Of a stretch of 64,000 nt of DNA, positions 4,849 to 56,880 are shown in pieces. The stretch lies in contig NC_086107.1 of NCBI RefSeq assembly GCF_963921235.1, positions 62,186,001 to 62,250,000 of the forward strand. The letters are read 5' to 3'. This DNA is from Mobula hypostoma. Lineage: Eukaryota. Below the pieces are notes generated by a model that was not told the origin of the DNA, made no database searches, and worked only from the letters and a program-made list of their open reading frames with translations. A program made the position numbers and the translations under genes. Numbering within the stretch: position 1 is the stretch's first letter; each line of letters begins with the position of its first letter.

Positions 4849-5023
4849 GCAAACACGAGGAAATCTGCAGATGCTGGAATTTCAAGCAACACACATTAAA
4901 GTTGCTGGTGAACGTAGCAGGCCAGGCAGCATCTATGGGAAGAGTGGGTAGGAGTGGGTCGACTGTACCTCTTCCTATAGATGCTGCCTGGCCTGCTGCG
5001 TTCACCAGCAACTTTTATGTGTG
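4849..5023. mobile_element. Penelope-like element terminus, fold-back (young subfamily), with TSD
   Basis: Inverted arms about 4890-4945 and 4968-5023; 16-bp TSD ATCC(T/A)GTGCACTAAAC at 4833-4848 and 5024-5039. Confidence 0.85.
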
Positions 5024-5246
5024 ATCCAGTGCACTAAACTCATCAAATGGTTAAATGGCCCTAAAGAAATGATATCCACCTGTGGGGGAATCCGTCCTCC
5101 ACTTTTCTAATGGGCAGGACTTCAAAGAGAAATAGCCACTTGCCTCAAAACACAACTCAAGTGATCTTATCTGCATTTTATGTATAAAGAACAAGAGTAA
5201 ATGATTCAATTTCAATATTCAACAAGGAACAACAGAATCATTATAT

Positions 5247-5466
5247 ACATCAAAGTTGCTGGTGAACGCAGCAGGCCAAGCAGCATCTATAGGAAGAGGT
5301 GCAGTCGACGTTTCAGGCCGAGACCCTTCGTCAGGACTAACTCTCGGCCTGAAACGTCGACTGCACCTCTTCCTACAGATGCTGCCTGGCCTGCTGCGTT
5401 CACCAGCAACTTTGATGTATGTTGCTTGAATTACCAGCATCTGCAGAATTCCTGTTGTTTGCGTTT
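5247..5466. mobile_element. Penelope-like element terminus, fold-back (young subfamily), with TSD
   Basis: Near-perfect inverted arms about 5247-5323 and 5343-5419; 13-bp TSD AGAATCATTATAT at 5234-5246 and 5467-5479. Confidence 0.88.
5303..5338 (-). ncRNA. Minimal type I hammerhead ribozyme motif (intact core)
   Basis: Minus strand reads AGUC-CUGACGA-A-GGGU(CUCG)GCCU-GAAA-CGUC-GACU: stem I AGUC/GACU, core CUGANGA/GAAA, cleavage triplet GUC, palindromic ACGU helix III. Confidence 0.8.
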
Positions 5467-5599
5467 AGAATCATTATATGTCTTAATTAACATAATTTAG
5501 AGCCTGATAGCTATAAGATATTTAGTAGAAAGGTCAGGTAATGATTCTTATGCTTAAATTGAAGCTGTAAGCAGGGTAGGAGTGGATAGAGAATTAAAA

Positions 5600-6010
5600 T
5601 GATGGAAGCCAAGAAATTTGGAGTAACATCACAGGTGAATGGTGGTACCCTGCAAAGCAGTCTCCCAATTTATAGCTTGTTTCCTCCATGTAGGGGAGAT
5701 CACATCATGAGCATCAGGAAAGGAGTGTTTTGGGTTTAGATGATTAAAATGGCAAATTTTACACCCCCCATGGCTGAGCAGAATGGTGTTATGGGAAGAG
5801 GTGGGACTGCATGAAGAGTGGACCAAGGTAGGGCGGGGTGAACATTGCTTTTGGAATGCAGAAAGTTGAGTGTAGGGTCAGATGTGTTTGGTGGTGGTGT
5901 TGTGCTCACTGTTCAACTGCCCAGGAAGATCCATTGAATGTGGAAGCTCATGGTGGTGGGAGATGAGAACAAGACGAACACTATTGCTAGAGGGAAACAG
6001 GTGAGAGCAG
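5600..6010 (-). mobile_element. Decayed Penelope-like ORF: linker plus GIY-YIG endonuclease
   Basis: Minus-strand relics LVHSSCSPT...GCKICHF and CS*CDLPYMEETSYKLGDCFAGYH resemble the PLE pattern CxxC.LYIGETxRxLxDRFxEH. Confidence 0.7.
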
Positions 6011-8059: not shown

Positions 8060-9250
8060 AATGGATTTTATCATAGGTAGGTGTGGAGTAATGCAGTTTG
8101 GACATTTAAACTAGGGTAGGACCTATACAGTGACTGGCAGGGCACTGCCGTGCATTATAGAACAAAGGGATCTGAGACTACCAGTCATAGAGACAAAAGG
8201 TGCTGATTATCTTGAGCAACGCACACACAAAATACTGTAGGAACTCAGCAAGTCAGGTACCATCTACGGAGGAGAATAGGCAGTCGACATTTCTGGCTGA
8301 GACTCTTCATCAGGACTCATGATGATCCTAACGAAGGGTCTCCACCCAAAATGTCCACTGCTTATTCCCTTTCATTGATACTGCCTGACTTGCTGAGCTC
8401 CTCCAGCATTTTATATATGTTGCTTGGGAGTACAAGTATACAATTTGCTGAAAGCAGCCATGAAAGTAGCTGGGTGGTGAAGAAGTCATTTAGCATTCTG
8501 CCCTTCATCAGTCAAGGCTTTGAGTTTAGGAGTGGAGACATTATAAAAGTCATTGATGACATCACACTTGGAGTATTGTGTACAGTTTTGGTCACACTGT
8601 TAGAAAAAAGACATTGTCAAGCTGTCATTGTTTTAATAAGACCATAAAACAGAGGAGCACAATTAGTCCATTCAGCCCATCGACTCTGTTCCACCATTCA
8701 ACTGATTTATTTTCCATCTCAACCCATTCTCCTGCCTTTGATGCCCTGACTAATCAAGAACATATCAAACTCTGCTTCAAAAATACCCAATGGCTTGGCC
8801 TCCATAGCCATCCGACTGAAGTATAGGGAGAGGCAAAGCCAGATCTTTATTCCTTGGAGAGTAGAGAATGAGAAGTGACCTCAAAGCAGTTTATAACTTC
8901 ATAATGGGTATGGATAAGGTGGATGGTTATAGTCTTTTTCCCAGGGTTGGGGAGTCTGAAACTATAGGGAACAGATGCAAGATAAGCAGTGAAAGATTTG
9001 AAAGAAACATGAAAGGTAACTTCTTTATACAGACAGTAACAAGTACCTAGAATGCCAGAGGAAGTGTTTGAGGTAGGTGTAATTGTAACTTTAAAAGACA
9101 TTTGGATAGGTTCATAGAGGGCAAAGGCTTGGAGGGTTATGGGCCTAACACCAGCAGCTAGGACTAGGATGGAAGATGCTGTGGTTGGCATAGACCGGTC
9201 AGGACAAAGGGCCTGTTTCCATACTGTCTGCTGTATGACACTATGACTGG
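8060..9250 (+). mobile_element. Old CR1 LINE 3' part, interrupted by a PLE palindrome and an opposite-strand CR1 3' end (about 8636-8815)
   Basis: MRSDLKAVYNFIMGMDKVD...LFPRVGESETIGNRCKI...MKGNFF (CR1 C-terminus); tail gggcctgtttcc...(tatgac)n. Confidence 0.8.
8211..8425. mobile_element. PLE fold-back terminus (older subfamily) with hammerhead motif on - strand at 8282-8317
   Basis: Inverted arms around 8318-8325; minus strand reads AGUC CUGAUGA A GAGUCUCAGCCA GAAA UGUC GACU (core intact, stem II eroded). Confidence 0.8.
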
Positions 9251-9339
9251 AATATGAAGAACAAAGACTTGTAGTGCAGAGGTTACAATGTTCCTAAGGT
9301 CTGTAAAGGTTGGTTCTTGAAAGACCATTTTTCTGGGCG

Positions 9340-12971: not shown

Positions 12972-14530
12972 GATATCCATACTGAGCTCCCAGTTGCATG
13001 CCCTTTCAAGTCTCCTTATTTGCCCAGCCACCTGTCTGTCCTTAGCCTTTCTCACTACTAGTCTGAGGCTAAATACACACTAAAAGAACAGAAGCTTATA
13101 TTCTTCCTGAATAGTCTACAACCCAATGGTATGAACATTGAATTTCACTATTTCAGATAACCCAAACCCTTGAGTGCCTTTCTCAAAATCAGAATCAGAA
13201 TCAGACTCACTGGTGTATACTGTGAAATACCTTATTTTGCTGCAGCAGTACTTTGCAATACATCTGACAGCCGTGGTGAAGAAGCTGTTCCCAAAATGTT
13301 GAGTGTGTGTCTTGTGGCTCCTGTACCTCCTCTTTGATGGTAGCAATGAGAAGAGGGCACATCCTGTGTGGTGGGGGTCCTTAATGATAGATGCCATTTT
13401 TTTGAGGTAAGGCTTTTTGAAGATTAGGCCTCGATACTGGGGAAGATAATACCCATAATGGAGCTAGCTGAGCTTGTGACTTTCTGCAGTTTTTTCCAAT
13501 CCTGCGCGGTGGTCCCTCCATACCAGACAGAGAGCCAGTCAGAATGCTCTCCACAGTACACCTGCAGAAATTTGTGAGAGTCTTTGGTGACATATCAAAT
13601 TTTTCTTCAATTCCTAATGAAATATATCTGCTGCTGTGCCTCCTTTGTAATAGTATGAATATGTTAGACCCAGGATAGATCTTCAGAGATGTTGACACCC
13701 GTGAACTTGAAAGCGCTCATCCTTTCCATTGCTGATCCCTTGATGAAGACTGATGTGTGCACCCTTAACTTCCCTTTCCTGAAGTTCACAATCAATCCCT
13801 TGGTCTTACTGATGTTGAGTACAAAGTTGTTGTTTCAACACCACTCACCAGCTGATCTATCTCACTCCTATACGCCTCCTCATCACCATCCATAGTTGGG
13901 TCCTCAGCAAATCTATAGATGACATTTGTGCTGTGCCTAGCTACACAGTTGTGGGTGTAGAGAAGGTAGAGCAGTGGGCAAGTTCGCCCAGTGATGATTG
14001 TCAATGAGGAGGAGATCTCTCTCTCTCTCTCCTTCTGATACATTTTCACCCCTAATTTCCAACAATGCATGCCCCTCTTAGCTCCCCATTACCTGGTTAT
14101 TCCTCTCTCCATCTGTTTCAATCTGCCCATCATCCACAGTTTTAACCTACGGGGACTTTTATCCCCTCCTCCAACTGATTCCTCCTGCTTATAACCCCTC
14201 TTTCTTTGGTTCCACTTCTCACCTTCCCTACTCAGCAGTTCCCAAAATCTACTGCCCTTTGTTGTTCCTCTTTCTCATCTTCCAGCCTCTGCCTCTTCTT
14301 CCACCTGGGTCCACCTACCCATCAAATCCCTCCTCATGTTCCCACTCCTCTAGGCTGCCTACCCCTGCCTGACCCCTTCCTCTCTTTGTTCTGGCAATTT
14401 CCTCTCTACATTCTCAGTTCTGATGCAGGTTCTTAACCTGAAGTATGAAATATCCCTCTGCATCCACAGATGCTGCCAGAACCATCAAGTTCTTACAGCA
14501 ATTTGTTTTTGCTTTAGACTCCAAAATCTC
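12972..14530 (+). mobile_element. Old Penelope-like element 3' part (GIY-YIG C-terminus, pyrimidine-rich 3' UTR, decayed hammerhead), split by a LINE insertion
   Basis: 12972-13160 reads ELPVACPFKSP...LSVLSL...SEAKYTLKEQKLIFFLNSLQPNGMNIEFHYFR* (PLE EQxLIFxLxxLQPxGMNIEF end). The element resumes at about 14040 with a CT-rich UTR and cagttctgatgcagg...gatgctgcc at 14414-14480. Confidence 0.78.
13187..14015 (-). mobile_element. Rex1/Babar-like LINE 3' fragment inserted in the PLE
   Basis: IIKDPHHTGCALFSLLPSKRRYRS...GNSFF; KTLTNFCRCTVESILTG; YRFAED...DEEAYRSEI; (ATCAGA)n tail. Confidence 0.88.
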
Positions 14531-16536: not shown

Positions 16537-17008
16537 CAATGCACACAAAATGCTGGAGGAACTCAGCAGGTCAGGCAGCATCAATGGAAAATAATAAACA
16601 GTCGATGTTTCAGGGTGAGACCTTTCAGCAGGAAAGAAACAGAAATGAAATGAATTTCAGCAGAAATGAAAGCACAGTCGAGGTTTTGAGCTGACGTACT
16701 TCATCAGGACCGGAAAGGAAGTGGGAAGAAGCCAGAACAAGAAGGTGGGGTGGGAGGGAAGGGAAACAGAAGGAGTACAAGCTAGAAGGTGATAGGTGAA
16801 ACCCGGTAAGTGGGGGAGGGGGATGAAGTAAGAAGCTGGCTTCTTATTCTGGCTTCTTCCCTCTTCCTTTCCGGTCCTGATGAAGTACGTCAGCCCAAAA
16901 CCTCGACTGTTCTTTCATTTCTATAGATACTGCCTGGCCTGCTGAGTTCCTGCAGAATCTTGTGTGTGTTGTTCTCGATTCACAGCATCTGCAGAAATTC
17001 TTGTGTTT
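16537..17008. mobile_element. Composite PLE fold-back terminus with mutated hammerheads
   Basis: Minus-oriented segments 16537-16633 and 16663-16840 plus a + arm 16841-17008; degenerate TSD attgttacaaatgg (16523-16536) / attattataaatgg (17009-17022). Confidence 0.82.
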
Positions 17009-17850
17009 ATTATTATAAATGGACCTCTTTCTTTCCTGTGCAGCTTAGAAAGATATATGGACATGCAAGAAATTTACCACAGAAGATCTTGAGTGGACAG
17101 GGTGGGATGTGGTAGGAATATCTGGAAAACTTCTCACTGATTCCCTTTACTGATCAAAACCAATCCAGGAGATAACATTGATTAACATGACAAGGTACAG
17201 CATTTCCTGCTTGCTCCGCCATTAGCGAGACGACCACCCACCACCGCGCCCCCCCCCCCCCAAGCCAAATACAACTCTTTGCCAGTCAGAAAAGAGAATC
17301 CAAACGTTGAACTTTGGAGTACCTGCTCAGGCATTCTCCCTTGATATTAATTTAACTTAACTTAATTTATAAAATGCATCTGCAGTGCAGCAGTACAAAA
17401 TAACCTTTAAGGCCTTGGATTATTTCATTGGATCAAATTTCCAGCTTAGTGAAAGAAACTATGAAAGCAGCGTGTGTAAATAATTGAAATCAGGCTTGTC
17501 AGCAAAAGGATTTTGAGTGGTAATCCTTATAATGAAACAGAACCATGCAAATGCGATGAGCGAATTATATTGCTGTCTAGGAAGTGGTTAAGATTTCTTT
17601 AGTTTCCTCCTTTCCCCAAACTTCTTGCCGTGATTTGTCTTGTAACAACTTGTTCACCCCTACTGCTTCAGTATGGAAGTAACATAAAGATTTCACTCTA
17701 CACCTATTCTGGTATAAATTTCAAGGCTTCATCATCAGGTTTAGCATCTGTAAACAAACGTTTCATTACTTACAAGCTGAAGTTTATTTATATTCTCCAA
17801 ACCTTTTGCACGTACATTTGTTACCTTTTTCTCACAACAATTTCTGGTCG

Positions 17851-17990
17851 TAAACACAAGAAGGTCTGCAGATGCTGGAAATCCAAAGCAACACACATAA
17901 AATGCTGGAGGAACTCAGCAGGCCAGGCAGCATCAATGGAAGTGAATAAACAGCTGATGTTTCATTCCGAGACCCTTCTTTAGGACAGGG
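17851..17990 (-). mobile_element. PLE terminus (older subfamily), hammerhead decayed
   Basis: ctgcagatgctggaaatcc...aaatgctggaggaactcagcaggccaggcagcatc...gagaccctt. Confidence 0.8.
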
Positions 17991-23600: not shown

Positions 23601-23837
23601 GCTACATAGAAAGTGCTGGAGGAAATTAGTGGTCAGGCAGCATCAATGAAGGAAAGTAGACAATCAACATTTCAGGTTGAGATCTTTCATATGGACTGAA
23701 TTAAAAGTCTGGATGAAGTGTCTTGACCTGCATGTTGGCTGTTCATTTCCCTCCATAGATGCTGCATGACTTATTGAGTTCTTCCAGGGAATTGTGCTCT
23801 TCTTCAAATTTCAGCATCTGGAGTCCCTTGTGTCTCC
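23601..23837. mobile_element. Old PLE fold-back terminus
   Basis: Degenerate inverted arms around 23700 (gtgctggagga...ggcagcatc / gatgctgc...cagcatctg). Confidence 0.72.
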
Positions 23838-31309: not shown

Positions 31310-31600
31310 ATAAACCTCTTCTCCTTCCCTTTCTCCAAATTGCCCACTCTCCTCTCCTATCAGATTCTTTCATATCCAGCCCTTGACCCTTCCCACCTAC
31401 CACCTCCCAACTAGCCTCTTTACTCTTCCCCCATCTTTTTACTGGGGCATTTTACCCCTTCCTTCTCCATCCTGATGAATGTCTGAAACGTCCACTGTTT
31501 ACTCTTTTCTATAGATGCTGCCTGACCTGCTGAGTTCCTTCTGCATTTTCTGTGTGATGCTTTGGGTTTTCGGCATCTGCAGACTTCCCTGTATTTGTGA
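31310..31600 (+). mobile_element. PLE 3' terminus; hammerhead with stem II deleted (31471-31496)
   Basis: CT-rich UTR, then cctgatgaatgtctgaaacgtccact...gatgctgcctgacctgctgagttcc...gcatctgcaga. Confidence 0.8.
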
Positions 31601-33920: not shown

Positions 33921-34458
33921 GCTAGGTCACAGCAAAGATATATTTAATATTTGCACTTACTCTCAGACTATAGTTGGTTAAGGAGAAAGCTATGCTCCTT
34001 GATGATTAGAAAAGCACTCCATTCCTCTGACCCACAGCCCACTCAAAGAGAACAATCAAAAACTGAATGGCTTTCTTTGGAAGATTTCCGGCAAGTGGCA
34101 AAGGATTAAGTTTACAATTTACTTTGATCACAGAAGAGGGCACAGTGATGGCGGGCAGGTGGTTTGTGAAGTCATAAGATTTCTAGGGATGAGGTTGCCT
34201 TTGAAGTCAGGCTTCTTTTTATATTCAGCAGTCCGACAGACTGCATAGTTCCACAGGTGGTTGTGTTCTACAATTAGTAATTAAGGGACGATTGTGACTA
34301 AGCATTATTTTGCATTTTCCAAATACAAGATGAAACCTGAAGCTTGCCCCCATCTTAAACTAGTGGACCTGCTATATTCTGTAAAATTGATAGAAAGCAA
34401 AATTCAAGAAATAACAAAAGCATGAAGAGCAATGGGAAAAGTAGTTGCTGAAAGTTCA

Positions 34459-34549
34459 CACACAAAATGCTGGAGGAACTCAGCAGGCCAGGCAGCATCT
34501 AGGGAAAAGAGTTAACAGTCAAAGTTTCAGACTGAATTCCTCCTGGTGC
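34459..34549 (-). mobile_element. Short PLE terminus with TSD
   Basis: cacacaaaatgctggaggaactcagcaggcc; TSD TTGCT(G/A)AAAGTTCA at 34445-34458 and 34550-34563. Confidence 0.8.
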
Positions 34550-34974
34550 TTGCTAAAAGTTCATGGGGTTTGATAGGTCCAGCCAAGAAAAGCATTTCAG
34601 CTTTTAGCATATGTTTACTGTTTACACTTTACCCCAAAATCCAAAATGAAAACCTCCTTTATAGTCTATAAGCCTTTATGTCTGTGCAAGTATCATTTAT
34701 GACCACTTGTCTGTCATCGTGACTTTTGGCTACTCATGTATGCAAATCTTGATAGAAGTTAACAAAATGATCTAGAATGGAAAGCTTAAACATAAATAGT
34801 GACTCTATTACAGGCTTTTGACCGGCAGTGATCACTTGTCAAATGAGCTCCCAATGATTCTAACTTGCTCGTGAGTGGTGGTAATACAGTAGCCTGATCA
34901 GATCTTGCCTAAGCTGCTGAGTTCCTCCAGCATTTTGTGCATTTTTTTATCACTATTGTTATATTGTTCAACTC

Positions 34975-35520: not shown

Positions 35521-35747
35521 AATTCTTCATTGTTGTTGATATTTCACCACTTGAGTTGTTTTGTGACCCAGGCTTTGATGAATTCATCCAGTGGGAGCAA
35601 TGGAATAAAAGTACTGGCCATACTTTCTTCTTTACCCCATTAACCCACGACAGTGAACTTCTTCCCTGCCTCTTTAAACCTAACAAGTTACCTTTTTATT
35701 TCTTTGGGTGAACAATCCTGAGATATGAAATGCATCATCATTGTTAT

Positions 35748-36100
35748 AAACATGAGAAAGTCTGCAGATGCTGGAAATCCAGAGCAACACTCACAAAATG
35801 CTGCAGGAACTCAGCAGGTCAGGCAGCATCTATGGAAATAAATAAACAGTCGATGTTTCAGGCTGAGAGCCTTCAGGACCGAGAAGGAAGCAGGGAAAGA
35901 TGCCAGACTAAAAATGGGAGGGGAGGGGCACCTGACAGCTAGTGTCATTAGCATCCCCCCCCCCTTTATATTCTGGCATCATACTTCTTCCTTCTCAGTC
36001 CTGAAGAAGGGTCTCAGCCTGAAATGTTGACTGTTTATTCATTTCCATAGATGCTGCCTTACCTGCTGACTTCCTCTAGCATTTTGTCTGTGTTGCTGTG
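35748..36100. mobile_element. PLE fold-back terminus (older subfamily)
   Basis: Inverted arms about 35785-35925 and 35955-36097; TSD catcat(t/a)gttat at 35736-35747 and 36101-36112. Confidence 0.85.
35997..36032 (+). ncRNA. Minimal hammerhead motif, sense to KCNQ1
   Basis: AGUC CUGAAGA A GGGU(CUCA)GCCU GAAA UGUU GACU; core intact, GUU triplet. Confidence 0.65.
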
Positions 36101-37829
36101 CATCATAGTTATTAGTATGTACCACACTGAGGACAGTGGAAAAGACAGCATGGTTCATCTTCCATGCTAGAATACTTTGCTGGGAAGATTTTGTTCCCTT
36201 AAATGATGGATCCCCGAGTATTTTAAGTGTGCATGGCTGGGATTAGTAATTCACTGTTGGGTGTTTCTGTAGGTTTGCCTGCAGCCTGCCCTTTGTTGTT
36301 GCATGCAAATCAAGTGGTGGCAAGTGCAGCAATATAACCTCACATCATTAAGAATTATGTACAGGGGAAGCTGATATGCAATATGTTCTTGATTTTGGTT
36401 TTATTCTCAATAGAAATTGAAGGCTCCAGATTTGTTAATGGAGCAGTTTCATGTTCACTAATTATGTTTTCATGTTAGCTTTTATTGACAATATATTATT
36501 AGTTTTCTGTCTTGTGGTCAGTGGGTCTTGCCTCATGGGGTGACATAATACGGATCAAGTTATAGTCTCTTTAAATGATGCCTTAAATTGGAAAGCTGGG
36601 GCAGGCCTGCAAACCACAGGCAATCAGGCAAATTAAATGAATGTCTGAAAAAAAAACAAAAATACCTTGAAACCTTGTTAAAATTCAAAAGCAAGGTGGC
36701 AGTCGAGTGAATGATAATGAATTTGATCAAAGGCAAGATATTGGCATTGGTCCAGCTGTGTCTTTTTATCTTGCTCTCCATCAGAGCGTTGTTCACTCTC
36801 TGTGATTTTATCTCTCGTGCCTTGTATGTCCTATTTCTATCCATCTAATGATCTCTTTTACTTTTCACTTGGTATAGTGATCTGCAGACTTACCAGTTCA
36901 GCCTTCTGTGTTAGGCTCCATATATCTTGCAATGTTTTTATGTGTCAGTTTTTCCTTTGATTATCTTTCTTTCTTCTTTTCTCATTGAGTGATTCCCCTT
37001 CACTATTTATCTGTATTCCTTCTCTGGCTGGTTGCTGTTCTGTGCCTGATTTTACATCTGTATCTCTTATAATTGGCTCCTTCCTTTGCTTACCCTATTT
37101 GCCTCCACGCTCAGTAATTTTCATTCCTTCTTTGCCTCTATCTGTGTCAACAATTTTTTCAATGACTTCCTCTTTTAATCTCATTTGAAAAAATGCTCTC
37201 TACTTTTTATTAAGCAATGCTTAATCAGTGACTGAAAGCTAGAAATTGGGGGGAAAGAAAATATAAATTAGTCCAAGTTTTATGGAAGACATAACATTGT
37301 TGTTTTTGGTGTAAAAGCATTTTAAGTTGCTCAGGGCTTGGCTTTGAATGTTTACGACCAAAGTTTGGATATTTCTGTAATTAATCCAACTTGTCTCAGC
37401 AGCAGTGAGAACTCAGTGGGACTATCATATTTCTGATGCTCGCAATTGCTCGCGAACTGCAAAATAAACCCCAGTACATTTGCTGTTTCAGTCTGTAATT
37501 GCTATTCTACAAAAAATAGTCATTTTACTTGGAAAAATACATTTTTTTCTGGAAAATTTATGGCCCCTTGACTTGTATCTGTAGAAATTGTATTGGAAAA
37601 AAAAGCTGTAAATCTAGAAAGTAAAATAATCCCAGATTTGCCAAAAATCATTTTTCCTAAAATGTTTCCACATCCTGTATGTTTTAAAACTGCATAAAAT
37701 TATCACTAGTTAAGGCAGGGGATATTCTAATTATATGAATTTTGACTGTGGAATCCTTTTTTCCAGCACCTTCAATAAAATATAATGATATATATCATCT
37801 ACTTATAAATATTAGATTAGATTAGGTTA

Positions 37830-38213
37830 CATGAGGAGTTCTGCAGATGCTGGAAAGTCAAGCAACACATAACAATGTTGCTGGTGAACACAGCAGGCCA
37901 GGCAGCATCTCTAGGAAGAGGTACAGTCGACGTTTCGGGGCAAGACCCTTTTCTTTCTCCCTGGGCCTCCTGTCCCATGATCCTCTCCTATCCCTTTTGC
38001 CAATCACCTGTCCAACTCTTGGCTCCATCCCTCCCCCTCCTGTTTTCTCCTATCATTTTGGATCTCCCCCTCCCCCTCCCACTTTCAAATCTCTTACTAG
38101 CTCTTCTTTCAGTTAGTCCTGACGAAGGGTCCCGGCCTGAAACGTCGACTGTACCTCTTCCTAGAGATGCTGCCTGGCCTGCTGTGTTCACCAGAAACTT
38201 TGATGTGTGTTGC
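37830..38213. mobile_element. PLE fold-back terminus (young subfamily) with perfect TSD
   Basis: Inverted arm 37830-37949 plus body 37950-38213; 13-bp TSD TTAGATTAGGTTA at 37817-37829 and 38214-38226. Confidence 0.9.
38115..38150 (+). ncRNA. Minimal type I hammerhead ribozyme motif, sense to KCNQ1
   Basis: AGUC CUGACGA A GGGU(CCCG)GCCU GAAA CGUC GACU; predicted cleavage after C38146. Confidence 0.8.
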
Positions 38214-38689
38214 TTAGATTAGGTTAGCTCTATTTGTCACATATACATCGAAATGTTGTTGCGTAAATGAAATCACCGGAGAAAAGTCCCGGCAAATATG
38301 AATCAGCTTCTTTATTCGACAAAACAAGATACAGCTGGCATCATGTTGAGGCCCTTTCAGTCGAAAGGTCTGGCTGGCCCAACATGGGCCTTAATATTTT
38401 ATGTGCTAAACATCAAAGGACAATCCATATTTACGACGCATCCATGATGCTTTCTTTGAAACTACACACAAAATTCACACCCCCTGATCCGCCCCCACAC
38501 CACAGACATCTAAATGAATTTTAATCAGCATTTTCTGGTCTGTGATTCAAGGCTTTTAGAAACCTATCATTGAAAGGTACATTTTAAATTTAATCTATAA
38601 TCCACTGTATAATTCAGATTTGAAAATTGGTGGCTGAAGTCATTTGCTAGATATGCTAAACCCAAAAATCACACTACCAGAAACATCCT

Positions 38690-38970
38690 GCTAAATTTGT
38701 CATTTGCGTTGACCAACACAGTCGAAGGCTGTGCAGGTGGCAGTCTGCCGTGTCGCCCTGCTTGGTTCCAGCACTAACATAACATGCCCACAATTTACTA
38801 ACCCTAACCTTAATAACTTCCCTGCGTCTTTGAAAGGTGGGGGAAAACCTGAGTACCTGGAGGAAAACAACATGGGTATGGGGAGAATGTATAAGCTCCC
38901 TTTGGACGGCAGTCGGAAATGAACCCTGATCGATATAAATATAAATGGTAGATTGCAGTGATATGTCAAC
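38690..38970 (-). mobile_element. V-SINE-like element
   Basis: gggaaaacctgagtacctggaggaaaac...gggagaatgtataagctcc is the reverse of the V-domain motif. Confidence 0.65.
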
Positions 38971-39066
38971 TGCACAAAGGAATAACTTAGCTACTTAAAG
39001 CTCCTCATTCCAAGATGGACGCCCCACTAATATTCGTCACAAAGCAAATCACTAAAATCTTTTTAA

Positions 39067-39588
39067 ACACTCTTTTTAAATCTTTTAAATCTTTTTTAAA
39101 GTGGCCACTTTATTAGGTACACATATTTATGCAAATATCTAATCAGCCATTATTGTGGCTGTAACTCAGTGCATAAAAACTTAGGAAATGTGATCCAAGT
39201 TACTTTGATCATGGAATCATTGTTAATGCTGGACAGGGTTGTTTGAGTGTCTCAGAAACTGCTAATCTCTTGGGATTTTCATGCACAACAGTCTCTAGAG
39301 TTCACAGAAAATGGGACGAAAAACAAAACAAAATCCACTAAGCAGCAGTTCAGGGGATGGAAATACCTTGTTAATAAACGAGGTCAGAGGAGAACGTTCA
39401 GACTGGTTCAAGCTGACAGGAAGGTGACAGTATCTCAAATAACCACATGTTACCACAGTGGTGTGCAGAAAAACATCTCTGAACGCACAGCACGTCGAAC
39501 CTTGAAGTCAATGAGCTATATCAATGGAAGACCACAAACATACACACAGTGGCCACTTTATTAGGTACAGAAAGTACACTGAGCGCAT
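39067..39588 (+). mobile_element. Tc1-derived non-autonomous element (TIR + transposase HTH region + internal TIR copy)
   Basis: agtggccactttattaggtaca at 39100 and again near 39548; relic SETANLLGFS...RGQRRTFRLVQADRKVTVSQITT...ISERTARRTL. Confidence 0.82.
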
Positions 39589-39997
39589 ATCTAAACTAAA
39601 TACCGCCAGTTTGTTTTGCATAGCGTGCCCATGCATGACCAGATAGCTCATTGTTAAGGTCTTTGTAATGACAACAGAGTCTATTGTGTAAATTGGTGTA
39701 AATTGAGTAACTTTACTTCAGCTTACTTAACTCTGAATTGAAAAGATTTAGAATTAATATTTACAGTTAGATGTTTTCCCGGTGATTTATTGCGTGAACT
39801 CTCACTTGCAGTTGCCCTGGCCACTCAAACGGCTGATTTTTCATTTTCCTTAGGATTTTAATAACTAATCATTGGAGATGTTGAAAGAAATGGTAAGACA
39901 ATTGGGAGTTGAAATTCACCTGGGATCACCAGTGCTAACAATTGAAGTCCAAAGGAAATGAATTTCACCACTGGGGCATTGTACATCTAGTCCTTCT

Positions 39998-40640
39998 AAG
40001 TTCAAAGTTCACAGTTTATATTATTTTTAAAGTGCATATATGTCACAATATACAACCCTGAGATTCAATTTCCTGCGGGTATACTCAGCAAATCTATAGA
40101 ATAGTAACTGTAACAGGATCAATGAAAGATCACAAACACAAGGAAATCTGCAGATGCTGGAATTTCAAGCAACACACATAAAAGTTGCTGGTGAACGCAG
40201 CAGGCCAGGCAGCATCTATAGGAGGAGGTACAGTTGACGTTTCGGGTCGAGACCCTTCGCCAGGACTAACTGAAAGAAGAGCTAGTAAGAGATTTGAAAG
40301 TGGGAGGGGGAGGGGGAGATCCAAAATGATAGGAGAAGACAGGAGGGGGAGGGATGGAGCCAAGAGCTGGACAGGTGATTGGCAAAAGGGATATGAGAGG
40401 ATCATGGGACAGGAGGTCTAGGGAGAAAGAAAGGCGAAGGGGTCAAGGATGAAAGATCAACTAGAGTGCAAAAGACAACAAACTGTACAAATGCAAATAT
40501 AAAGAAATATCAATAAGTAACAGAAACGTGAGATAACACGTTAAAGAGTCCTTAAAGTGAGGTAAGTGGTTGTGGGAATATTTCAATGGATGGGCAAGTA
40601 AGTGTAGTTATCCCTTTTTCTTCAAGAGCCTGACGGTTGT
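39998..40640 (-). mobile_element. Rex1/Babar-like LINE 3' tail hosting a PLE insertion
   Basis: aagttcaaagttc tail...tacaaccctgagattc...gttgtgggaa...caagagcctga; colinear with 911-1255. Confidence 0.8.
40133..40448 (-). mobile_element. PLE terminus (young subfamily) with TSD; hammerhead at 40232-40267 carries an A6G core change
   Basis: 11-bp TSD ATGAAAGATCA at 40122-40132 and 40449-40459; minus strand reads AGUC CUGGCGA A GGGU(CUCG)ACCC GAAA CGUC AACU. Confidence 0.9.
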
Positions 40641-40977
40641 GAGGTCATTGTGTCCAAGGTACTTTCCTGATAGGGAGCCATCGGTGGTCAGGAGGGCCTA
40701 GGTTCCAGGACAAGGCTATCCCATTGCACTTCAGGTGTGCTGACACCTACAATATCCCCAAATGCAGGATACTCGAACGCAGAATTTGTTGTAGTGGGGG
40801 ACAGCGTTTGCGCTCTCCCCTGAAAAAAAAGGTTAAATTTCAACTTGATTGGCCCAATAATTTTGCTCTAATCTTGTTCAGTGTACCAATATGTAATAGC
40901 TCATAATTCCTAAAGATGAGTTGCTCATTGACCTAACTGAGGCAATCAAATCCAGAAGGACCCAGTTCTGATCAACA

Positions 40978-41067
40978 CACACAGTACACACAAAATGCTG
41001 GAGGAACTCTGCAAGTCAGGCAATAGCCATGGATTGGAATAAATAATTGATGTTTCAGGCTGAGACC
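40978..41067 (-). mobile_element. Short old PLE terminus
   Basis: cacacaaaatgctggaggaactc...tttcaggctgagacc; TSD ttctgatca(a/g)ca at 40966-40977 and 41068-41079. Confidence 0.75.
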
Positions 41068-41577
41068 TTCTGATCAGCAGGTGTGAACAAGGATCACTGT
41101 GGAAGTCCTATGAAAGACTTTAGTGATCTTTAATTCCTTTTTGATGATGATATCTGTGGACATACCTGCATGCAGACACTGAGTAAAGAGACTCTGGTTA
41201 ACCAGTGAAGTTTTGCAGTGACTGCACATTGTCACACTCACTTAATGCACATCGTCTCAGCTACAAGCTGAAGAACTGCAACCCAGATTAAACAAAGAGA
41301 TTCGTGTTAATGAAATCATATTCCAGTGATGGATTAAACACAGTAGGAAAGCAGAAGGAAAGGAAGAAATAGGATGGGAAATCTTTTAACCTGCATTTAA
41401 AATGTATTTAGTTATTTAATGTGCAAAATTGAAAATGCATTTTTTCTGTTTCAACAATAAAACATGAACTATAGCTTTAAAAAGAGGATGTTTAATTATA
41501 CTCAGAAAATAAAACTTCATGAAGAAGTCTTTTTCTCAAAGGTCTTCACTCCTAACATGCTCCTGCTTTATTTACAG

Positions 41578-41653
41578 GCTGAGGGATTCCCACAGGATCA
41601 CCATCAAGGTGATTCGCAGGATGCAGTATTTTGTAGCAAAGAAGAAATTTCAG
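41578..41653 (+). CDS. KCNQ1: KCNQ1 (Kv7.1) internal coding exon, equivalent to human exon 12 (helix B, calmodulin-binding)
   Basis: Acceptor tttatttacag|G, branch-like CCTAAC at 41551-41556, donor CAG|gtgagt. 76 nt translating (Q)[25 protein letters not shown], matching human [25 protein letters not shown] with the same exon length and phase. Confidence 0.97.
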
Positions 41654-44279: not shown

Positions 44280-44522
<243 letters not shown>

Positions 44523-45611: not shown

Positions 45612-47907
45612 AGAAAACCAGAGATTTTGATCAATTTACCGAGGATTTTTGTTTGCGATTCACATGCTCCTTTTTTCACAGTGGAGCCCAAAACACAGGG
45701 AAAATTTAAATCATGACAAACTAAAAACTCTAAAACTGAAATGTCAGCTGTTCAAAAGTATTCATCCTCTTTGTCTATTATTTAGTTGAACTGCCTCTTG
45801 AACACAAAAAAATCTGCAGATGCTGGAAATCCAAAGTAACACACAGAAAATGCTGGAGGAACTCAGCAGGCCAAACAACATCTCTGGAAATGAGTAAACA
45901 GTCAACGTTTTGGGCCTAGCCACTTCTCGCAGCTACTATGGCCAGCAGTCTTTTTGGATAAGTCTTGATTAGCTTTGTACAATATGATATAGCAAGATTT
46001 GCCCATTCTTCCTTGCAAGATTGCTCAAGCTGTGCAGGGTTAGTTGGGGAATGGTGGTGGACACCAATCTTGAGGTCTTGCCAAAGACATTTGATTGGTT
46101 TAAGGCCAAGGCTCTGACTGGTCCACTGAAGGACATCAATTTTCTTCATTTGGACCCACTTCATGGTTGCTCCGGCAGTGTGCTTTAGGTCATTATCTTG
46201 CTGAAAGACAAACTTCCTCTCCAATTTAAGCTTCCTGGCAGAGGCGAGCAGGTTTTTATTCAGGGTTTCTCTGTATGTTGCAGCATTCATGCTCCCATCA
46301 ATCCTGACCAGATTTCCAGTCCCTGCTGCTGAAACGCAACTCCATAGCACGATGCTACCACACCACACTTTACAATAGCGATGGTATTATCTGGTGATGT
46401 GCAGCATTAGGTTTATGCCACACGTGTCACTTAGTGTTGAGGCCAAATAGTTCCACTTTAGTTTCATCTGACCACAAGACCTCTTCCACAGTTTTGCAGT
46501 ATCTTCTAAGTTATTGTATTGCAAGGTCTTTAAGGGCAAGGATATGCTTTTTTTAAAAGCCAGATCTCCTTCCTTGCCATTCCTCCATAAATACCTTTTC
46601 TGTGCAAGGCCTTAGAGGTCGAGCTTTCAACTTCAAATCCAGTTGCAGCCGATGACTTCTGCAGCTCACTGTGAGGGACTGTTGGCATCACAGCAGCCTC
46701 TCTTACAAGTGCCATTCTTCTCCAGTAAGTTTCGAGATGCACCTGACCTAGGCAGTGCGGCTGTGGTTTCATAATTTTTCCACTTTTTCACGATGGATTG
46801 CACTGAACTTTGAGGTTTGTTCAGTGCCTTTGAGAGGATCTTGTACCCTTACCCAGGTTTGTGTTTCTCTGTTTTAATTTCCCTGACTTGTCTTGAATGC
46901 ATTTCTGTCTTCATTTTGGTTTGCTTTGCGACCATACTGTTGGACCTCAAAGAGAGAGGGGATAGTTCTTTGTTTCATGCTGTCTGTGGGAAGAAGACTC
47001 TCAGGGATGTATACTGCATGCACACTGTTGTGACTTTGAACAATATCACCGAACAGACACTGAAGCTAATGGATATGGAGGTGTTTATTCTGCAAAAAAC
47101 AAGCAGCAGGCATTATATTCGAGACAGCCTTGGAAGAAGAGGCTTGCCTGACCCAATATTACATGGCTTTTTTATATGCTAAAGATCAAAGGTAACAGCA
47201 GGGCAATTCTATAGTTATCCATAATGCTTCCATAATTTTCAAACACTTCCTTCTGCACACCCACACTCCAGACACCCAAAATGAATGTTAAACAGCATTG
47301 TCTCTCTCTAGCTGCATTTATGTAAATGCAGACATCAAATGAATGCTGTTTCCTGGTGTGCATTCAACCCCAGTCTGCATTTCCAGGAAGACCATTATTC
47401 TGAGCTGTGTTTTAAATTCAATCTACAATCCACACTCAAATCTAAAGACTGGTTGCTGTTGAAATTAGTATTTGCTATATACCCTAACCCCAGAATACGC
47501 CCTAATACACACTTCGATAATAAATATACTTTCAACAATTCAACCCTTGTACTTCCAACTTTGAACTTTGAATTTTATTCAAAGTATTCCTGTGAATTCA
47601 TTGAAAGCAGTTACTCCTCTGGTTTTCTACATCAACAAATTGGGTGAGTGGGTAATGTAGTATATTGCCACTAAGTAATTATGTAGTAATTACAAAGGGG
47701 ATGAATACTTCTCCAGCCTCACAATTTTAGTTTTTAATTTTTAGCAAATTGTTGACAGGTTTTGGAATTTTTCTACTGATTTTACATGATGCACAATGTT
47801 TTGTAGATTAGCTGAAAAATCCTACTTCAATATGTTTTAAATTTAGAAAATGAGACAATAAAATGTGAAAATAGTTGGGGGGCTGAATACTTTTTCAAGG
47901 CACTGTA
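45612..47907 (-). mobile_element. Tc1 DNA transposon (DD34E-type transposase pseudogene) with internal insertions
   Basis: GSIVLWSCVSAAGTGNLVRIDGSMNAATYRETL...FVFQQDNDLKHTA...WTSQSLGLKPIKCLWQDLK; terminus TA-CAGTGCCTTGAAAAAGTATTCA (minus) ending at 47907; inner repeats at about 45753 and 47700; PLE fragment at 45800-45917. Confidence 0.92.
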
Positions 47908-51570: not shown

Positions 51571-51641
51571 TAACTTATCATTCTGCCCATCTTAAACGTT
51601 TTGTGCATCGAATAAATCTTCCTTTAACGTAGAAGCAATCC

Positions 51642-54250
51642 TGTTATGGTACACACCCAACCATACTAGCCCCTTTGGTTTAGACATTCCAGTTTTCCAG
51701 CGTATGGATAGCTGGTGCTGTCCCTTTAAAGATCCTGGTCTGCTCCACTAATTGGCAGCCATATCTTGGCACCAAGATTTGGAATTTAAAGAGCACCTGA
51801 ACTCGGGTTCGGTGCTCAGTCATCAGCTCAACTTTGGTTCAGCCTGCTATTGCATTTAGGATTTCCGTCTCCTTTGGATTCTCAACTAGTTTCATCAAGT
51901 TCTGGTGAAGAGTAAACCTGCAACCTTGAGGACAGTAAGGAAATGGTCGGAGGAGGCTTATGAGGCGCTCCAGGGTTGTTTTGAGGTGACAGACTGGCAG
52001 ACACTCTGTGAGCCACATGGAAAGGATATTGATGGGCTCACAGGGTGCATCACTGATTACATCAACAGTGTGGACTGCAATGTTCCGACAAGAACTGTCC
52101 TTTGTTATTCAAATAACAAGCCATGGGTAACAAAGGACATTAAGGACATCCTGAACGTTAAAAAGAGAGCGTTTAGAGATGGAAATAGGGAGGACTGAGG
52201 GCAATATGGAGTGACCTGAAAGCCAGGATCAGGGAGGCTAAAGACAGGTACAGGAGGAAGCTTGAGTGGAAACTCCAGCAGAACAACATGAGAGAGGTCT
52301 GGAGTGGGATGAGGACCATCACTGGGTTCCGGCAAACTAGCAACAGAGGAGCTGAAGGCAGTGTGGACAGGGCCAACAAACTTAACCTGTTCTTTAACAG
52401 ATTTGACATTGTGGCCCCTGCCCATCCTCCACATGAGTCATCTGTTGTCGGCCCCCAACCAACACGTATTCCACTCTCCGCTCCTACCCCTCCTCACAGT
52501 CCCCCACCCTGCTCTCATGACTATACCCCTTCCCCACACGAAACCACCACGGTGGGCTTCATGGCTGAATAGGTGAGAAGACAGCTGAAACGTCTCAACC
52601 CAAGCAAGGCTGCAGGACCGGATGGTGTCAGTACCAGGGTGATCAAAGCCTGTGCCCCTCAGCTATATGGAGTACTTTGCCATGTCTTCAACCTGAGCCT
52701 GAGGCTCCGGAGGGTTCCTGTGCTGTGGAAGACGTCCTGCCTTGTCTCTGTGCCGAAGACGCCGTGCCCCAGCGGCCTCAATGACTACAGACCGGTGGCA
52801 TTGACCTCCCACATCATGAAGACCCTGGAGAGACTTGTTCTGGAATTGCTCCAGCCTATGGTCAGGCCACACTTAGATCCCCTCCAGTTCGCCTACCAGC
52901 CCTGACTAGGAGTTGAGGATGCCACTGTCTACCTGCTGAACCATGTCTACGCCCACCTGGACAAGTCAGCGAGCACTGTGAGGGTCATGTTTTTTGACTT
53001 CTCCAGTGCGTTCAACACCATCCGCCCTGCTCTGCTGGGGGAGAAGCTGACAGCGATGCAGGTGGATGCTTTCCTGGTGTCATGGATTCTTGATTACCTG
53101 ACTGGCAGACCACAGTACATGTGCTTGCAACACTGTGTGTCCGACAGAGTGATCAGCAGCACTGGGGCTCCACAGGGGACTGTCTTGTCTCCCTTTCTCT
53201 TCACCATTTACACCTCAGACTTCAACTACTGCACAGAGTCTTGTCATCGTCAGAAGTTTTCGGATGACTCTGCTATAGTTGGATGCATCAGCAAGGGAGA
53301 TGAGGCTGAGTACAGGGCTGCGGTAGGAAACTTTGTCGCATGGTGTGAACAGAATTATCTGCAGCTTAATGTGAAAAAGACTAAGTTGCTGGTGGTAGAC
53401 CTGAGGAGAGCTAAGGCACCGGTGACCCCTGTTTCCATCCAGGGGGTCAGTGTGGACATGGTGGAGGATTACAAATACCTGGGGATACGAATTGACAATA
53501 AACTGGACCGGTCAAAGAACACTGAGGCTGTCTACAAGAATGGTCAGAGCCGTCTCTATTTCCTGAGGAGACTGAGGTCCTTTAACATCTACCGGACGAT
53601 GCTGAGGATGTTCTACCAGTCTGTGGTGGCCAGTGCGATCATGTTTGCTGTTGTGTGCTGGGGCAGCAGGCTAAGGGTGGCAGACACCAACAGAATCAAC
53701 AAACTCATTCGTAAGGCCAGTGATGTTGTGGGGATGGAACTGGACTCTCTGACGGTGGTATCTGAAAAGAAGATGCTATCCAAGTTGCATGCCATCTTGG
53801 ACAATGTCTCCCATCCACTACATAATGTACTGTTTGGGCGCAGGAGTACATTCAGCCAGAGACTCATTCCACCAAGATGCAACACAGAGTGTCATAGGAA
53901 GTCATTCCTGCCTGTGGCCATTAAACTTTACAACTCCTCCCTTGGAGGGTCAGACACCCTGAGACAATAGGCTGGTCCTGGACCTATTTCCTGGCATAAT
54001 TTACATAGTACTATTTAACTGTTTATGGTTTTATTACTATTTAATTATTTATGGGTGCAACTGTAATGAAAACTAATTTCCCCCGGGATCAAAAAAGTAT
54101 GACTATGACTATGACTGTGACTATAAGTTCTCAACTAGCGTCTAGTCAAGAAACCCCCTCTTGTCTCAGTCCCGAAATCGCATCTCGATTCTAGTCTTGG
54201 TTACTCCAACACTTGGGTCCTTACTATCCTCATCTAGGCCTCTCGTCACA
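51642..54250 (+). mobile_element. Probable solo LTR (~360 bp: 51642-51889 and 54139-54250) split by a Rex1 insertion
   Basis: Ends TGTTATG...CGTCACA; flanks AATCC (51637-51641) and GATCC (54251-54255); ttgggtcc motif near the 3' end. Confidence 0.6.
51890..54127 (+). mobile_element. Young 5'-truncated Rex1 LINE with nearly intact RT ORF
   Basis: Frames 52288-52572, 52573-52905 and 52978-53970 are one frame broken by two point stops, with one frameshift near 52195. Motifs NDYRPVALT, FFDFSSAFNTI, GAPQGTVLSP, KFSDD, YKYLG; (GACTAT)n tail; 11-bp TSD TTCTCAACTAG at 51879-51889 and 54128-54138. Confidence 0.95.
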
Positions 54251-54439
54251 GATCCCAGCCTGATCAGTCATTCTCGTACCCAATTTCCTCCAACCTCTGC
54301 CACTATCCTCGGAAGTCTCTTCTGTTTCCCTCTCTCAGGCCTTCATCCATCCTGTAAGACAGTAACCAGTACCGATGCGGCCTAACCTGGGCTTTGTACC
54401 ATTTTATATAATCTCCTGCTTTACTCATCTAAAGCTCAA

Positions 54440-55170
54440 ACAATCAAAATCATCTTTATTGTCACTGTCTTAAATTACAAAATAAGGGAAAAGTACAAAA
54501 AGAAGCAATGTTGATAGGCTCATAGACAATTGACAAATCTGATGATGGTGAGGAAGAAGCTCTTTCCAAGTTGTTGAGCGTGGGTCTTCAGGCTCCTGTG
54601 CCTAAAACCCTGATGGTAGTAAAGAGAAGGGGGCATGTCCCAGAAGGTGAGTTTTTTTCATGATGGATGCCACCATCTTGAGGCAAAGACTCTTGAAGAT
54701 ATCCTTGATGGTGGGGAGGGTCGTGCTTGTGATGAAACTGGCTGAGTCTGCAACCCTCTACAACTCCTTCTGATTCTGCACAGGGGAGCCTCCATGTCAG
54801 GTGATGATACAACCTGTCAGAATGCTCTCCATGATGCAGCTGTAGAAATTTGCTAGTCTTTGGTGACAAACCAAATCTCCTCAAAGTCCTAACAAAGTTG
54901 GGCTACTGGCATACCTTCTTCATGCATCGGTCTGTTCGGTCCAGGATAGATCCTCCAAGATGTTGACACCCAAGAATGTAAAGCTCACCCTTTCCACCAT
55001 TGATCCCTTAAGGAGGACAGCTGCATCTTTCTGCAACTTTCCCTTCCTGAACTCCACAATCAGTTCTTTGGTCTTCTGACAATGAGTGCGCAGTTGGCAT
55101 TGTGATGCCACTCAGCTAGCCGATCCATTTCACTCCTGCATACCTCCTCTGAGATTTTACCACCAACAGT
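54440..55170 (-). mobile_element. Rex1/Babar-like LINE 3' fragment (decayed)
   Basis: KTKELIVEFRK...VERVSFTFLGVNILEDLSW; MRRFGLSPKT. Confidence 0.85.
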
Positions 55171-55999
55171 GAAGGGAACCTGTTTTCTTGTAAGCAGCCT
55201 GCATAGCACTCCAAAAACATCCTGTTCCTTTCTAACCTGCTACTGTCCTTTCACAGCTTTGCAATCAACATCTCTTCTGTGGAAACACAGAACACATATA
55301 AGATCTATTAATAACCACAGAGCAGATTTTCATTGTGAAAGGATGCAAAAATATAGATGTCTTCTAAGGCCTGAAAGTATCAAAGTCAATTTCTGTCCAG
55401 TTACCAATAACAAAAACACTCTTCAAATGCTTTTTAGCATTTTGTTAAATGAAATTATAACTAGTCTAGTGAACTGTAGCAATAAGGAAATACAGCAGAT
55501 TCGGGTTAATTGGGACCAGTACATCTTGGCCCAATTAAGCAGATGCCCCAATTAGGTAGTGGACAATTCAACAGCCATACTTGAGCATAGAATTGAGAAC
55601 ATCAGTCATAGAGGAAGTTCAAAAGCAAGAATTGAAACATTGTCCATCCAGGAGGAGGTGGTGTAGGTGGGCAAGTACTGACATTTGAGAGAATGAGATG
55701 ATATAAGTTAAGATATATGGAAACCGACTGTCCTAATGACGGTGTGGATTAGTGGTCCAACAGTCAAATATACAGCCACAGCTGTAAGCAGTTGACAGAG
55801 AGAGGGATGGAAGTCGTGACTCAGCAAGGAATCTTGTGCCAAAGAATGAAGACAACTGCCTCTGCCTTCCTAATGCTAAATTAATGGACACTTCCGCTTC
55901 CTCTGTACAGAATGCTACTTAAGTGGTCAGAGAAGTTGGACTGTGGCTATGAAGCAATAGGAAATGCAGTTTCAATTTTATTTTGGAAGTAAATGTTCC

Positions 56000-56880
56000 A
56001 TAAAACATAGAACAGGGCAGCTCAGGAAGAAGCCCTTTGGCCTTCCCTGTATGTACCAACCACGATGTCAGTCTATCTAATCCGATCTTCCTGCACGTAG
56101 TCTGTATCTCTCTACCCTTGCCTGTTTAAATGTTTTGTCTAAATATGTTTTTAAATGTTGGAACCATATCTGCTTCTATCACCTCTCCTGAAAGCACATT
56201 TCAGGTATTGACCACTTTCAATGTAAAGCTGGCCTCACATATCTCCTTTAAGCATATCCCCTCTTACCTTAATGCCACACCTTCTATTATTTGACATTTC
56301 CACCGTGGGATAAAGACTCCAGTAATTATCTCTCTCATCATTTAATGGATATCTATTGGGCTTTCCTTCAGCAGCCAACAATTCAGAGGAAACAACCCAA
56401 GTTTGTCCACCAACGGGGCCTGATGAAGCGTCTTGGTCCAAAATGTTGACTATTTATTCCTTTCCATGGAGGCTGCCTGACCTGCTGACTTCCTCCAGCA
56501 TTTTGTCTGTGTTGCTCTGGATGTCCAGCATCTGCAGAGTCGCTTGTGTCCAAATCTGTCTACCCTCCATATAATTAACACACTTTAGTCCAGGCAACAT
56601 TCTGATGAACATCTGCTCTCTCTCCGAAGCCACCACATTCTTCCAGTAGAGTGGTGATCAGAATTGTACTCAGTACTCCAAATGTAGCCTAATTAAAGAT
56701 TTACACAGCTGCAACACGAGCTCCCAACTTTTATACTCAATGCCCCAAATGACAAAATCAAGCATGCCATTGGCCTATCCACTTGTGCTACCACTTTTAA
56801 GAGCAATGGACTTGCACCCCAAGATCCTTCTGTATATCATTGCTCCTAAGGATCCCGTTGTTAATTGTGTACCTTTCATT
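56000..56880 (-). mobile_element. Old CR1 3' fragment containing a + strand PLE terminus (56412-56549)
   Basis: cataaaacatagaac tail; cagaattgtactcagtactccaaatgtagcct; PLE part cctgatgaagcgtcttggtccaaaatgttgact...cagcatctgcaga. Confidence 0.78.

Follow-up and report, generated by a model that had tools for sequence, protein, structure and literature searches.

An intronic, gap-free stretch of 64,000 nt from the ray Mobula hypostoma (NC_086107.1; 42% G+C; hereafter the window, to which all positions refer) contains a family of short repeats that are, with a probability we put at roughly 0.85, chopped 3'-terminal parts of Penelope-like elements (PLEs), i.e. the ends of their pseudo-long terminal repeats (pLTRs), each of which entered the ray genome as an independent insertion. 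A BLAST search of the window with a single arm of one copy matched 17 segments (E down to 1e-68); word searches returned 21 occurrences of subfamily-diagnostic words (7 + 14) and 17 of a conserved box, GATGCTGCCTGGCCTGCTG, and four longer references identified 14 clear loci together with fragments at 34900 and 14373. These searches agree with a preliminary description of this DNA, which had reported about 15 short insertions with one common terminus, many of them palindromic: seven loci (4850, 5247, 8198, 16537, 23604, 35748 and 37829) are inverted pairs with their termini pointing outward, and a further seven are single arms. The loci are 88-474 bp long, with arms of 66 to about 316 bp, and jointly cover some 3.4 kb, or about one locus per 4 kb. 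The layout of the terminus is already published for PLEs, and the repeats are a new family of an already described kind.

That the copies are discrete insertions, as the preliminary description held, follows from their target-site duplications (TSDs) and from an empty site in a related species. Six copies have TSDs scoring at least 10 (4850, 16 bp; 5247, 13 bp; 34457, 14 bp; 35748, 12 bp; 37829, 15 bp; 40133, 11 bp), with one mismatch in those at 4850, 34457, 35748 and 37829 and none in the other two, a score that only 0.5% of 400 random pseudo-insertions attained. Weaker duplications of 9-10 bp surround 16537, 31314 and 40981, and the scored TSD search detected none at 8198, 17852, 23604, 45801 and 56419, the five oldest-looking copies, so that the earlier statement that most copies carry TSDs of 11-16 bp holds for the young ones and not for these five. 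When public contigs of related species were aligned to 35600-41200, a 692-nt contig from the more distant relative (about 4-5% diverged in unique DNA) was found to join 37816 directly to 38214, and the 397-nt gap corresponds exactly to the 37829 insertion plus one copy of its TSD, i.e. a precise empty site. A closer relative (about 1.4% diverged) contains the left edge of the same insertion, and the site provides a dated presence/absence polymorphism between related rays.

The same alignments bear on the age of the copies. Subfamily A (4850, 5247, 37829 and 40133) is 87-97% alike, keeps its CpGs and is absent from the more distant relative at the one orthologous site testable; subfamily B is 59-81% alike by block, is CpG-decayed and is present in that relative at one tested site, where the right edge of the 35748 copy was found. 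Identity, CpG decay and the relative's sites confirm two age subfamilies, as recognised earlier. Genomic abundance is probably very high, of the order of 1e5 loci as an order of magnitude only: 383,311 contigs of one genomic run align to the 5.6-kb stretch at no less than 85% identity, and summed contig depth, which is not a copy number, is 1e5-4e6 on bins containing repeats vs about 18 on unique DNA. The earlier expectation of very many copies genome-wide is borne out to the extent that contig pile-up can be a guide. Related copies also occur in contigs guessed to be RNA, from which starts, ends and strand cannot be read. The main use of these results is in annotation, as about 5% of this intronic window, and probably that large number of loci genome-wide, consists of Penelope tail ends that would otherwise be mis-called as hairpin RNAs, miniature inverted-repeat transposable elements (MITEs) or novel ribozyme genes.

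One line of evidence for the attribution to PLEs is a 36-nt motif in the terminus. The sequence AGUC-CUGACGA-A-GGGU-CUCG-GCCU-GAAA-CGUC-GACU is perfect at 5303-5338 (minus strand) and 38115-38150 (plus strand), and the pattern CTGANGA-N13-GAAA occurs four times in the window against 0.27 expected. A complete catalytic core (C3-U4-G5-A6-N7-G8-A9, G12-A13-A14, A15.1-U16.1, H17) is present in these two motifs and in those at 35997-36032 and 8282-8317, with core mutations in the others; overall, two motifs are intact, two more are core-intact and about 12 are decayed, mostly at CpGs. Accordingly, the ACGU palindrome is kept in young copies and reads AUGU or ACAU in old ones, most of which have lost the CpGs of both ACGU and CGAC. 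A covariance model built from ten copies gave 16 matches with E<0.05 in the window, all within terminus loci. The majority states of the two subfamilies differ within the 36-mer only at N7 and at one base of loop 2, and between subfamilies the ribozyme (identity 0.70) and the GATGCTGCCTGGCCTGCTG box (0.85) are better conserved than the spacer (0.44) and the proximal end (0.50).

Minimal hammerhead ribozymes (min-HHRs) of PLE terminal repeats were defined by Cervera & de la Pena 2014 (PMC4209133); they have an extra base between 9 and 10.1, a palindromic C15.2-G16.2 within ACGU and a 4-bp helix I, and occur as solitary motifs in thousands per genome as well as in opposite-strand pairs 100-700 bp apart (PMC4209133). 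The ray motifs share these features: they are of type I, with an open 4-bp helix I, CUGANGA and GAAA boxes and an unpaired base between 9 and 10.1; they have no real helix III, and their palindromic ACGU would be able to pair between two molecules; and they lie in a terminal repeat, in many, mostly solitary copies with some opposite-strand pairs. Unlike invertebrate PLE min-HHRs, in which helix II is often drawn with 6-8 bp, that of the ray has 4 bp, with a G.U at 10.1-11.1 in most copies. The ray lies outside the sampling of PMC4209133, and its motifs are candidate ribozymes. The earlier assignment of the 36-nt motif to the minimal type I PLE layout fits the published features, and the core of that reading, a PLE-borne minimal hammerhead predicted to depend on dimers, is right.

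A second line of evidence is the anatomy of the arms, which we describe in ribozyme sense orientation and in the coordinates of the longest copy (minus strand of 40133-40445), where the hammerhead occupies 179-214. The 3' ends fall into two classes, at about 270-280, just past GTGTGTTGCT, and at about 310-313, separated by some 35 bp that we call the tail. Exactly one arm is tailed in seven of seven fold-backs (the 8198 tail being only partial), an arrangement with a probability of about 0.001-0.008 under independent assignment of tails. The boxes GATGCTGCCTGGCCTGCTG and CCAGCATCTGCAG are conserved and predicted to pair, with an inner AGCA...TGCT hairpin between them; tail-less arms end just past the inner hairpin and tailed arms 15-17 nt past the outer helix. 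The position of the arm ends relative to this predicted stem-loop, whose boxes are invariant and so offer no covariation, is consistent with initiation beside it. The inner ends of the arms differ in all seven pairs, such that every fold-back junction is unique. A junction common to 37829 and 40133, of the kind that would favour a fold-back master, was considered and ruled out by alignment, in which the 16 nt of 40133 taken for antisense sequence proved to be native to the pLTR and to recur where the old copy 31314 begins.

Inverted termini lying between direct duplications, and the long hairpins that they form, might equally be expected of cut-and-paste DNA elements of the MITE or foldback type, which have terminal inverted repeats and move without reverse transcription. 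We regard this as very improbable, because the same terminus is also found as single arms with TSDs of their own (34457, 40133 and 31314), the arms of a pair are unequal and break at a different point in each copy, the TSDs range in length between 9 and 16 bp, only one of the two outer ends in a pair has the tail of about 35 bp, and the terminus contains a PLE-type ribozyme.

Each of these features has a counterpart in canonical PLE insertions (Evgen'ev & Arkhipova 2005; Arkhipova et al. 2013, PMC3846280; Craig et al. 2021, PMC8557442; Frangieh et al. 2024, PMC11167929), namely extensive 5' truncation, a head-to-head inverted twin that is itself 5'-truncated, an optional tail of 30-40 bp that is as a rule confined to one end, short variable TSDs, and two reverse transcription start sites, here deduced from the two classes of 3' end. 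In rotifer PLEs one of two inverted pLTRs carries a 31-bp tail, TSDs are 8-10 bp and pLTRs suffice for mobilisation in trans (PMC3846280); the ray TSDs, at 10-16 bp, are somewhat longer. A lizard PLE protein cuts and extends both DNA strands in vitro and begins reverse transcription at two neighbouring internal sites, separated by a distance that matches the tail; short RNAs are enough as templates, and ribozyme mutants leave insertion unimpaired (PMC11167929). The window is a natural illustration of these two start sites and of both-strand priming, and the fold-back form is not novel, being a published signature of PLEs (PMC8557442, PMC3846280, PMC11167929). The ray copies depart from canonical insertions in that most lack any open reading frame (ORF) and most of the pLTR, and in that the window contains no partial tandem.

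Published PLE biochemistry allows a putative mechanism to be outlined. The part copied consists of the minimal, putatively dimer-dependent type I hammerhead followed by a module of 65-100 nt in which reverse transcription would start. The element's endonuclease would make a staggered break, giving rise to the duplication of 10-16 bp, and reverse transcription would initiate inside the RNA at either of two nearby sites, leaving the tail of about 35 bp or none; synthesis would usually abort early or run off a short RNA, so that only 90-320 bp are copied. If both ends of the break prime cDNA synthesis on the 3' module, the two short cDNAs could be joined head-to-head in a single event, yielding a tail-out inverted pair with a junction unique to that event. 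The hammerhead would travel as part of the template, staying constant in active lineages and decaying after insertion, CpGs first, and in fold-back copies it would be buried in a long hairpin. In twin priming of L1, reportedly described by Ostertag and Kazazian in 2001, two cDNAs are likewise said to be primed from both ends of one staggered break, creating an inversion within one TSD. There the second primer anneals internally on the same RNA and an inverted 5' segment results, whereas both arms of a ray fold-back start at the element's specific 3' initiation module, the product being a tail-out palindrome.

Hairpins of this kind are indeed predicted for fold-back transcripts (-171 and -186 kcal/mol), with the ribozyme buried in them. 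Rfam models of unrelated microRNA precursor families gave below-threshold look-alikes (E 2e-5 to 0.02) at 4905-5008, 5298-5367 and 35876-36001; the fold-back hairpins are their sole cause, and automatic microRNA annotation could be misled by them.

The preliminary description had left open whether the smallest copies are extreme truncation products or a non-autonomous, retrozyme-like class. Extreme truncation accounts for them better, and, by that description's own reasoning that junctions shared across loci would mark a non-autonomous family, the difference between all seven junctions argues against a non-autonomous fold-back class. Animal non-LTR retrozymes (Cervera & de la Pena 2020, PMC7229834; Li et al. 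2026, preprint, 10.64898/2026.07.22.740005) resemble the ray copies in being non-coding, in bearing type I hammerheads related to PLE pLTRs and in their proposed dependence on PLE enzymes. In retrozymes, units of 170-400 nt that each bear a ribozyme are repeated directly in tandem and expressed as circular RNAs, whereas the ray copies lie scattered and flanked by TSDs, singly or in inverted pairs, apart from one decayed case. No tandem array of intact ribozymes was found in the window, the sole same-strand pair (16600 and 16676) being decayed, and the copies are therefore not retrozymes.

The 5' ends of the arms offer a small lead on the RNA that the elements actually copy. Immediately past its TSD the 40133 copy opens with 23 nt that agree at 19 of 23 positions with the beginning of the old single-arm copy at 31314, which likewise adjoins its TSD, from which it follows that this segment is native pLTR sequence with a discrete 5' end, the pLTR start, some 160-180 nt upstream of the ribozyme. 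In 37829 the sense arm starts some 16 nt further in, and a short microhomology marks its junction with the antisense arm. The 5' end of the subfamily A pLTR, GACCCCTTCGCC (40433-40444, minus strand), is complementary to the hammerhead segment GGCGAAGGG(G)TC (40247-40261, minus strand), such that a pLTR-length RNA could mask its own ribozyme; it is this same similarity that served as microhomology at the 37829 junction. Across 21 arms the 5' ends are bimodal: three lie at the pLTR start and seven within 5 nt of ribozyme position 1, and ten fall between -5 and +9 of that position (binomial P = 7e-5 vs a uniform spread), with the boundaries of old copies good only to about 5 nt. Neither arm extends beyond the ribozyme 5' edge in two of the pairs (8198 and 23604).

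Pyrimidine tracts that end in CAG and resemble a 3' splice site lie at 38090-38116, 35985-35998 and 40266-40290 (minus strand), each directly before a hammerhead, a parallel to the Penelope element of Drosophila virilis, in which an intron ends exactly at helix I (PMC4209133). The cluster of 5' ends at the ribozyme edge may possibly stem from a short, discrete RNA, from transcription beginning at a second site or from an end linked to splicing.

One account of this cluster would replace truncated PLE ends by a separate non-autonomous family, akin to short interspersed elements (SINEs) or retrozymes, whose short master RNA of about 125-135 nt runs from the 5' edge of the hammerhead to the module where reverse transcription starts and is copied in trans by the PLE enzyme, fold-backs and mini-units being its normal products. 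In its favour, seven of the 21 arms start no further than 5 nt from ribozyme position 1 and ten between -5 and +9 (P 7e-5), both arms end there in 8198 and 23604, and upstream homology is still detectable in copies of the same age (31314, 35748 and 16537); it also draws on the sufficiency of pLTR sequences alone for trans mobilisation in rotifers (PMC3846280), on the use of short RNAs as templates in vitro (PMC11167929) and on the 2026 preprint that derives animal retrozymes from pLTRs. Against it, a pause or an RNA end in the transcripts of the autonomous element would yield the same cluster; moreover, intact ribozymes are nowhere repeated directly in tandem in the window, no two fold-backs share a junction, the 5' ends of old copies are placed to within some 5 nt, with no TSD to fix the boundary in five, and the copies in the window are too few and too decayed to reveal substitutions separating mini-units from longer copies. 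We consider such a family unlikely, at about one chance in five if stated loosely. Slightly less likely still is the specific proposal that the RNAs have two discrete 5' ends, one where the pLTR begins and one exactly at the 5' border of helix I, in place of random truncation, with an abundant RNA of about 125-135 nt, comprising ribozyme and reverse transcription start, serving as a dedicated minimal template; if it were true, the ray's Penelope elements would have in this template a SINE-like parasite, which would explain much of their very high copy number.

Several results weigh against the interpretation of the loci as truncated hammerhead-bearing PLE ends. Simple random truncation predicts another spread of the arm 5' ends than the one observed. 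The PLE min-HHRs described in the literature show poor cleavage in vitro. No hammerhead was found with the Rfam models (types I, II, III, HH9 and HH10), either at the gathering threshold or at E<=10, a miss that is expected because these models require a real helix III, which is absent here. Among the window copies, helices I and II show no compensatory change on both sides of any pair, and the 81% of cells that are paired equals the shuffled value; as the copies stem from near-identical masters, this comparison is uninformative rather than contrary, and the structural assignment within the window is consequently based on conservation and on agreement with the published motif. In the conservation check set beforehand, then, excess conservation of the motif between source lineages was found, and stem covariation was not. 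Lastly, none of the termini in the window has a PLE reverse transcriptase or a GIY-YIG ORF linked to it; the source element lies outside the window.

This last point is at odds with the preliminary description, according to which decayed GIY-YIG ORF ends at 5600-6010 and 12972-13160, the latter followed by the same terminus, tied the motif to a PLE. Neither of the proposed remnants is linked to a terminus, and they were not recognised: five ORF-remnant pieces gave no Pfam match, an 82-aa piece no homologue candidates and a 32-aa ORF-end piece no usable Atlas match, and neither tblastn nor a motif scan found a second copy of the ORF end in the window. The stop-interrupted ORF end at 12972-13157 (plus strand; ..ELPVACPFKSP..KEQKLIFFLNSLQPNGMNIEFHYFR*) is not adjacent to a terminus, being followed instead by (GAATCA)n and the tail of a minus-strand long interspersed element (LINE). 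We take this piece to read like the C-terminus of PLE endonucleases, a resemblance unconfirmed by any search. The 3' end of a LINE-type ORF (..IIKDPHH..RRYRS..), which ends in a (TGATTC)n microsatellite, lies at 13116-13397 on the minus strand and abuts it. Open frames with RVT_1 matches at 52906-53967 (plus strand; also ALKBH8_N) and 59388-60206 (minus strand) are unlinked to the Penelope termini and look like LINE remnants.

Turning to the individual loci, the subfamily A fold-back at 4850-5023 consists of a tailed antisense arm (4850-4944) and a sense arm (4958-5023), both cut off 3' of the ribozyme core, between copies of the TSD ATCC[T/A]GTGCACTAAAC. That at 5247-5466 has an antisense arm (5247-5342) holding the intact motif 5303-5338 and a tailed sense arm (5342-5461/5466), with the TSD AGAATCATTATAT. 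The third, at 37829-38215, combines a tailed antisense arm (37829-37950) with a sense arm (37950-38215) that is a near-complete pLTR and holds the intact motif 38115-38150; its TSD is 12-15 bp long. The remaining member of subfamily A, at 40133-40448 (minus strand), is a complete, tailed solo pLTR whose motif (40232-40267) has an A6-to-G core change and whose TSD, ATGAAAGATCA, is perfect.

Amongst the older fold-backs, that at 8198-8426 (subfamily B) has its arms head-to-head at the 5' edges of the ribozyme motifs, of which 8282-8317 (minus strand) is core-intact and 8324-8359 (plus strand) decayed, and the very decayed subfamily B pair at 23604-23833, with a tailed sense arm, likewise meets at the ribozyme 5' edges. 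The arms of the subfamily B fold-back at 35748-36097 reach about 65-70 nt upstream of the motif; the antisense arm is tailed, and the core-intact motif 35997-36032 (plus strand) is CpG-decayed in helix III. The old fold-back at 16537-17010 has long arms, with about 95 nt upstream of the motif, a tailed sense arm and a 10-bp TSD with one mismatch. Its antisense arm holds two hammerhead-like motifs, at 16676-16711 and 16600-16635, 76 nt apart, and its sense arm a single one (16873-16908). The inner parts of these arms are 95% alike and the outer parts only 74%; this difference and the double motif suggest that the arms derive from different templates or from a template switch.

The single arms include an old, complete pLTR at 31314-31597 (plus strand), which starts as the 40133 copy does, has a tailed end, a helix II deletion in its hammerhead and a 9-bp TSD with one mismatch, and a tail-less arm of 88 bp at 34457-34544 (minus strand) that is cut off inside helix II. 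The others belong to subfamily B and begin at or near the ribozyme 5' edge: a tailed arm with a decayed motif at 17852-17989 (minus strand; at the edge), and decayed copies at 40981-41081 (minus strand; tail-less, near the edge), 45801-45926 (minus strand; tailed, near the edge) and 56416-56549 (plus strand; tailed, at the edge). A short subfamily B terminus fragment lies at 34900-34951 (plus strand), and a weak older relative of uncertain membership at 14373-14511 (plus strand) has 63-65% identity and a hammerhead-like remnant (E 0.46).

The host gene encodes a KCNQ-type channel, exons of which were located by motif scan on the plus strand at about 41580-41650 and 44400-44495, with a Pfam KCNQ_channel score of 47 bits vs a cut-off of 25. 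It is presumably KCNQ1 rather than another KCNQ, as judged by the human protein only. Given this orientation, the hammerhead of 38115-38150, which is intact, has the same sense as the pre-mRNA, as might be expected if the motifs were host-selected regulators of KCNQ acting, for example, by pre-mRNA cleavage. We find this scarcely credible, even less so than cut-and-paste transposition, since the motifs occur on both strands without bias and are nearly all decayed, and since the one intact sense copy is missing from a related species, needs a dimer partner and is predicted to be buried in a fold-back hairpin.

About 200 bp from the 40133-40448 copy, a full-length sequence resembling U1 small nuclear RNA is present at 40659-40822 (plus strand; Rfam RF00003, 95 bits). 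Its 5' splice-site-recognition end is altered (GUACUUUCCUG), and contigs cover it about 15 times as deeply as unique DNA; this sequence is likely to be a U1 variant or pseudogene within a KCNQ intron. Other very high-copy repeats occupy 39153-39713 and 39901-40087, where summed depth reaches 1e5-5e5 in three species, and are also found in contigs guessed to be RNA.

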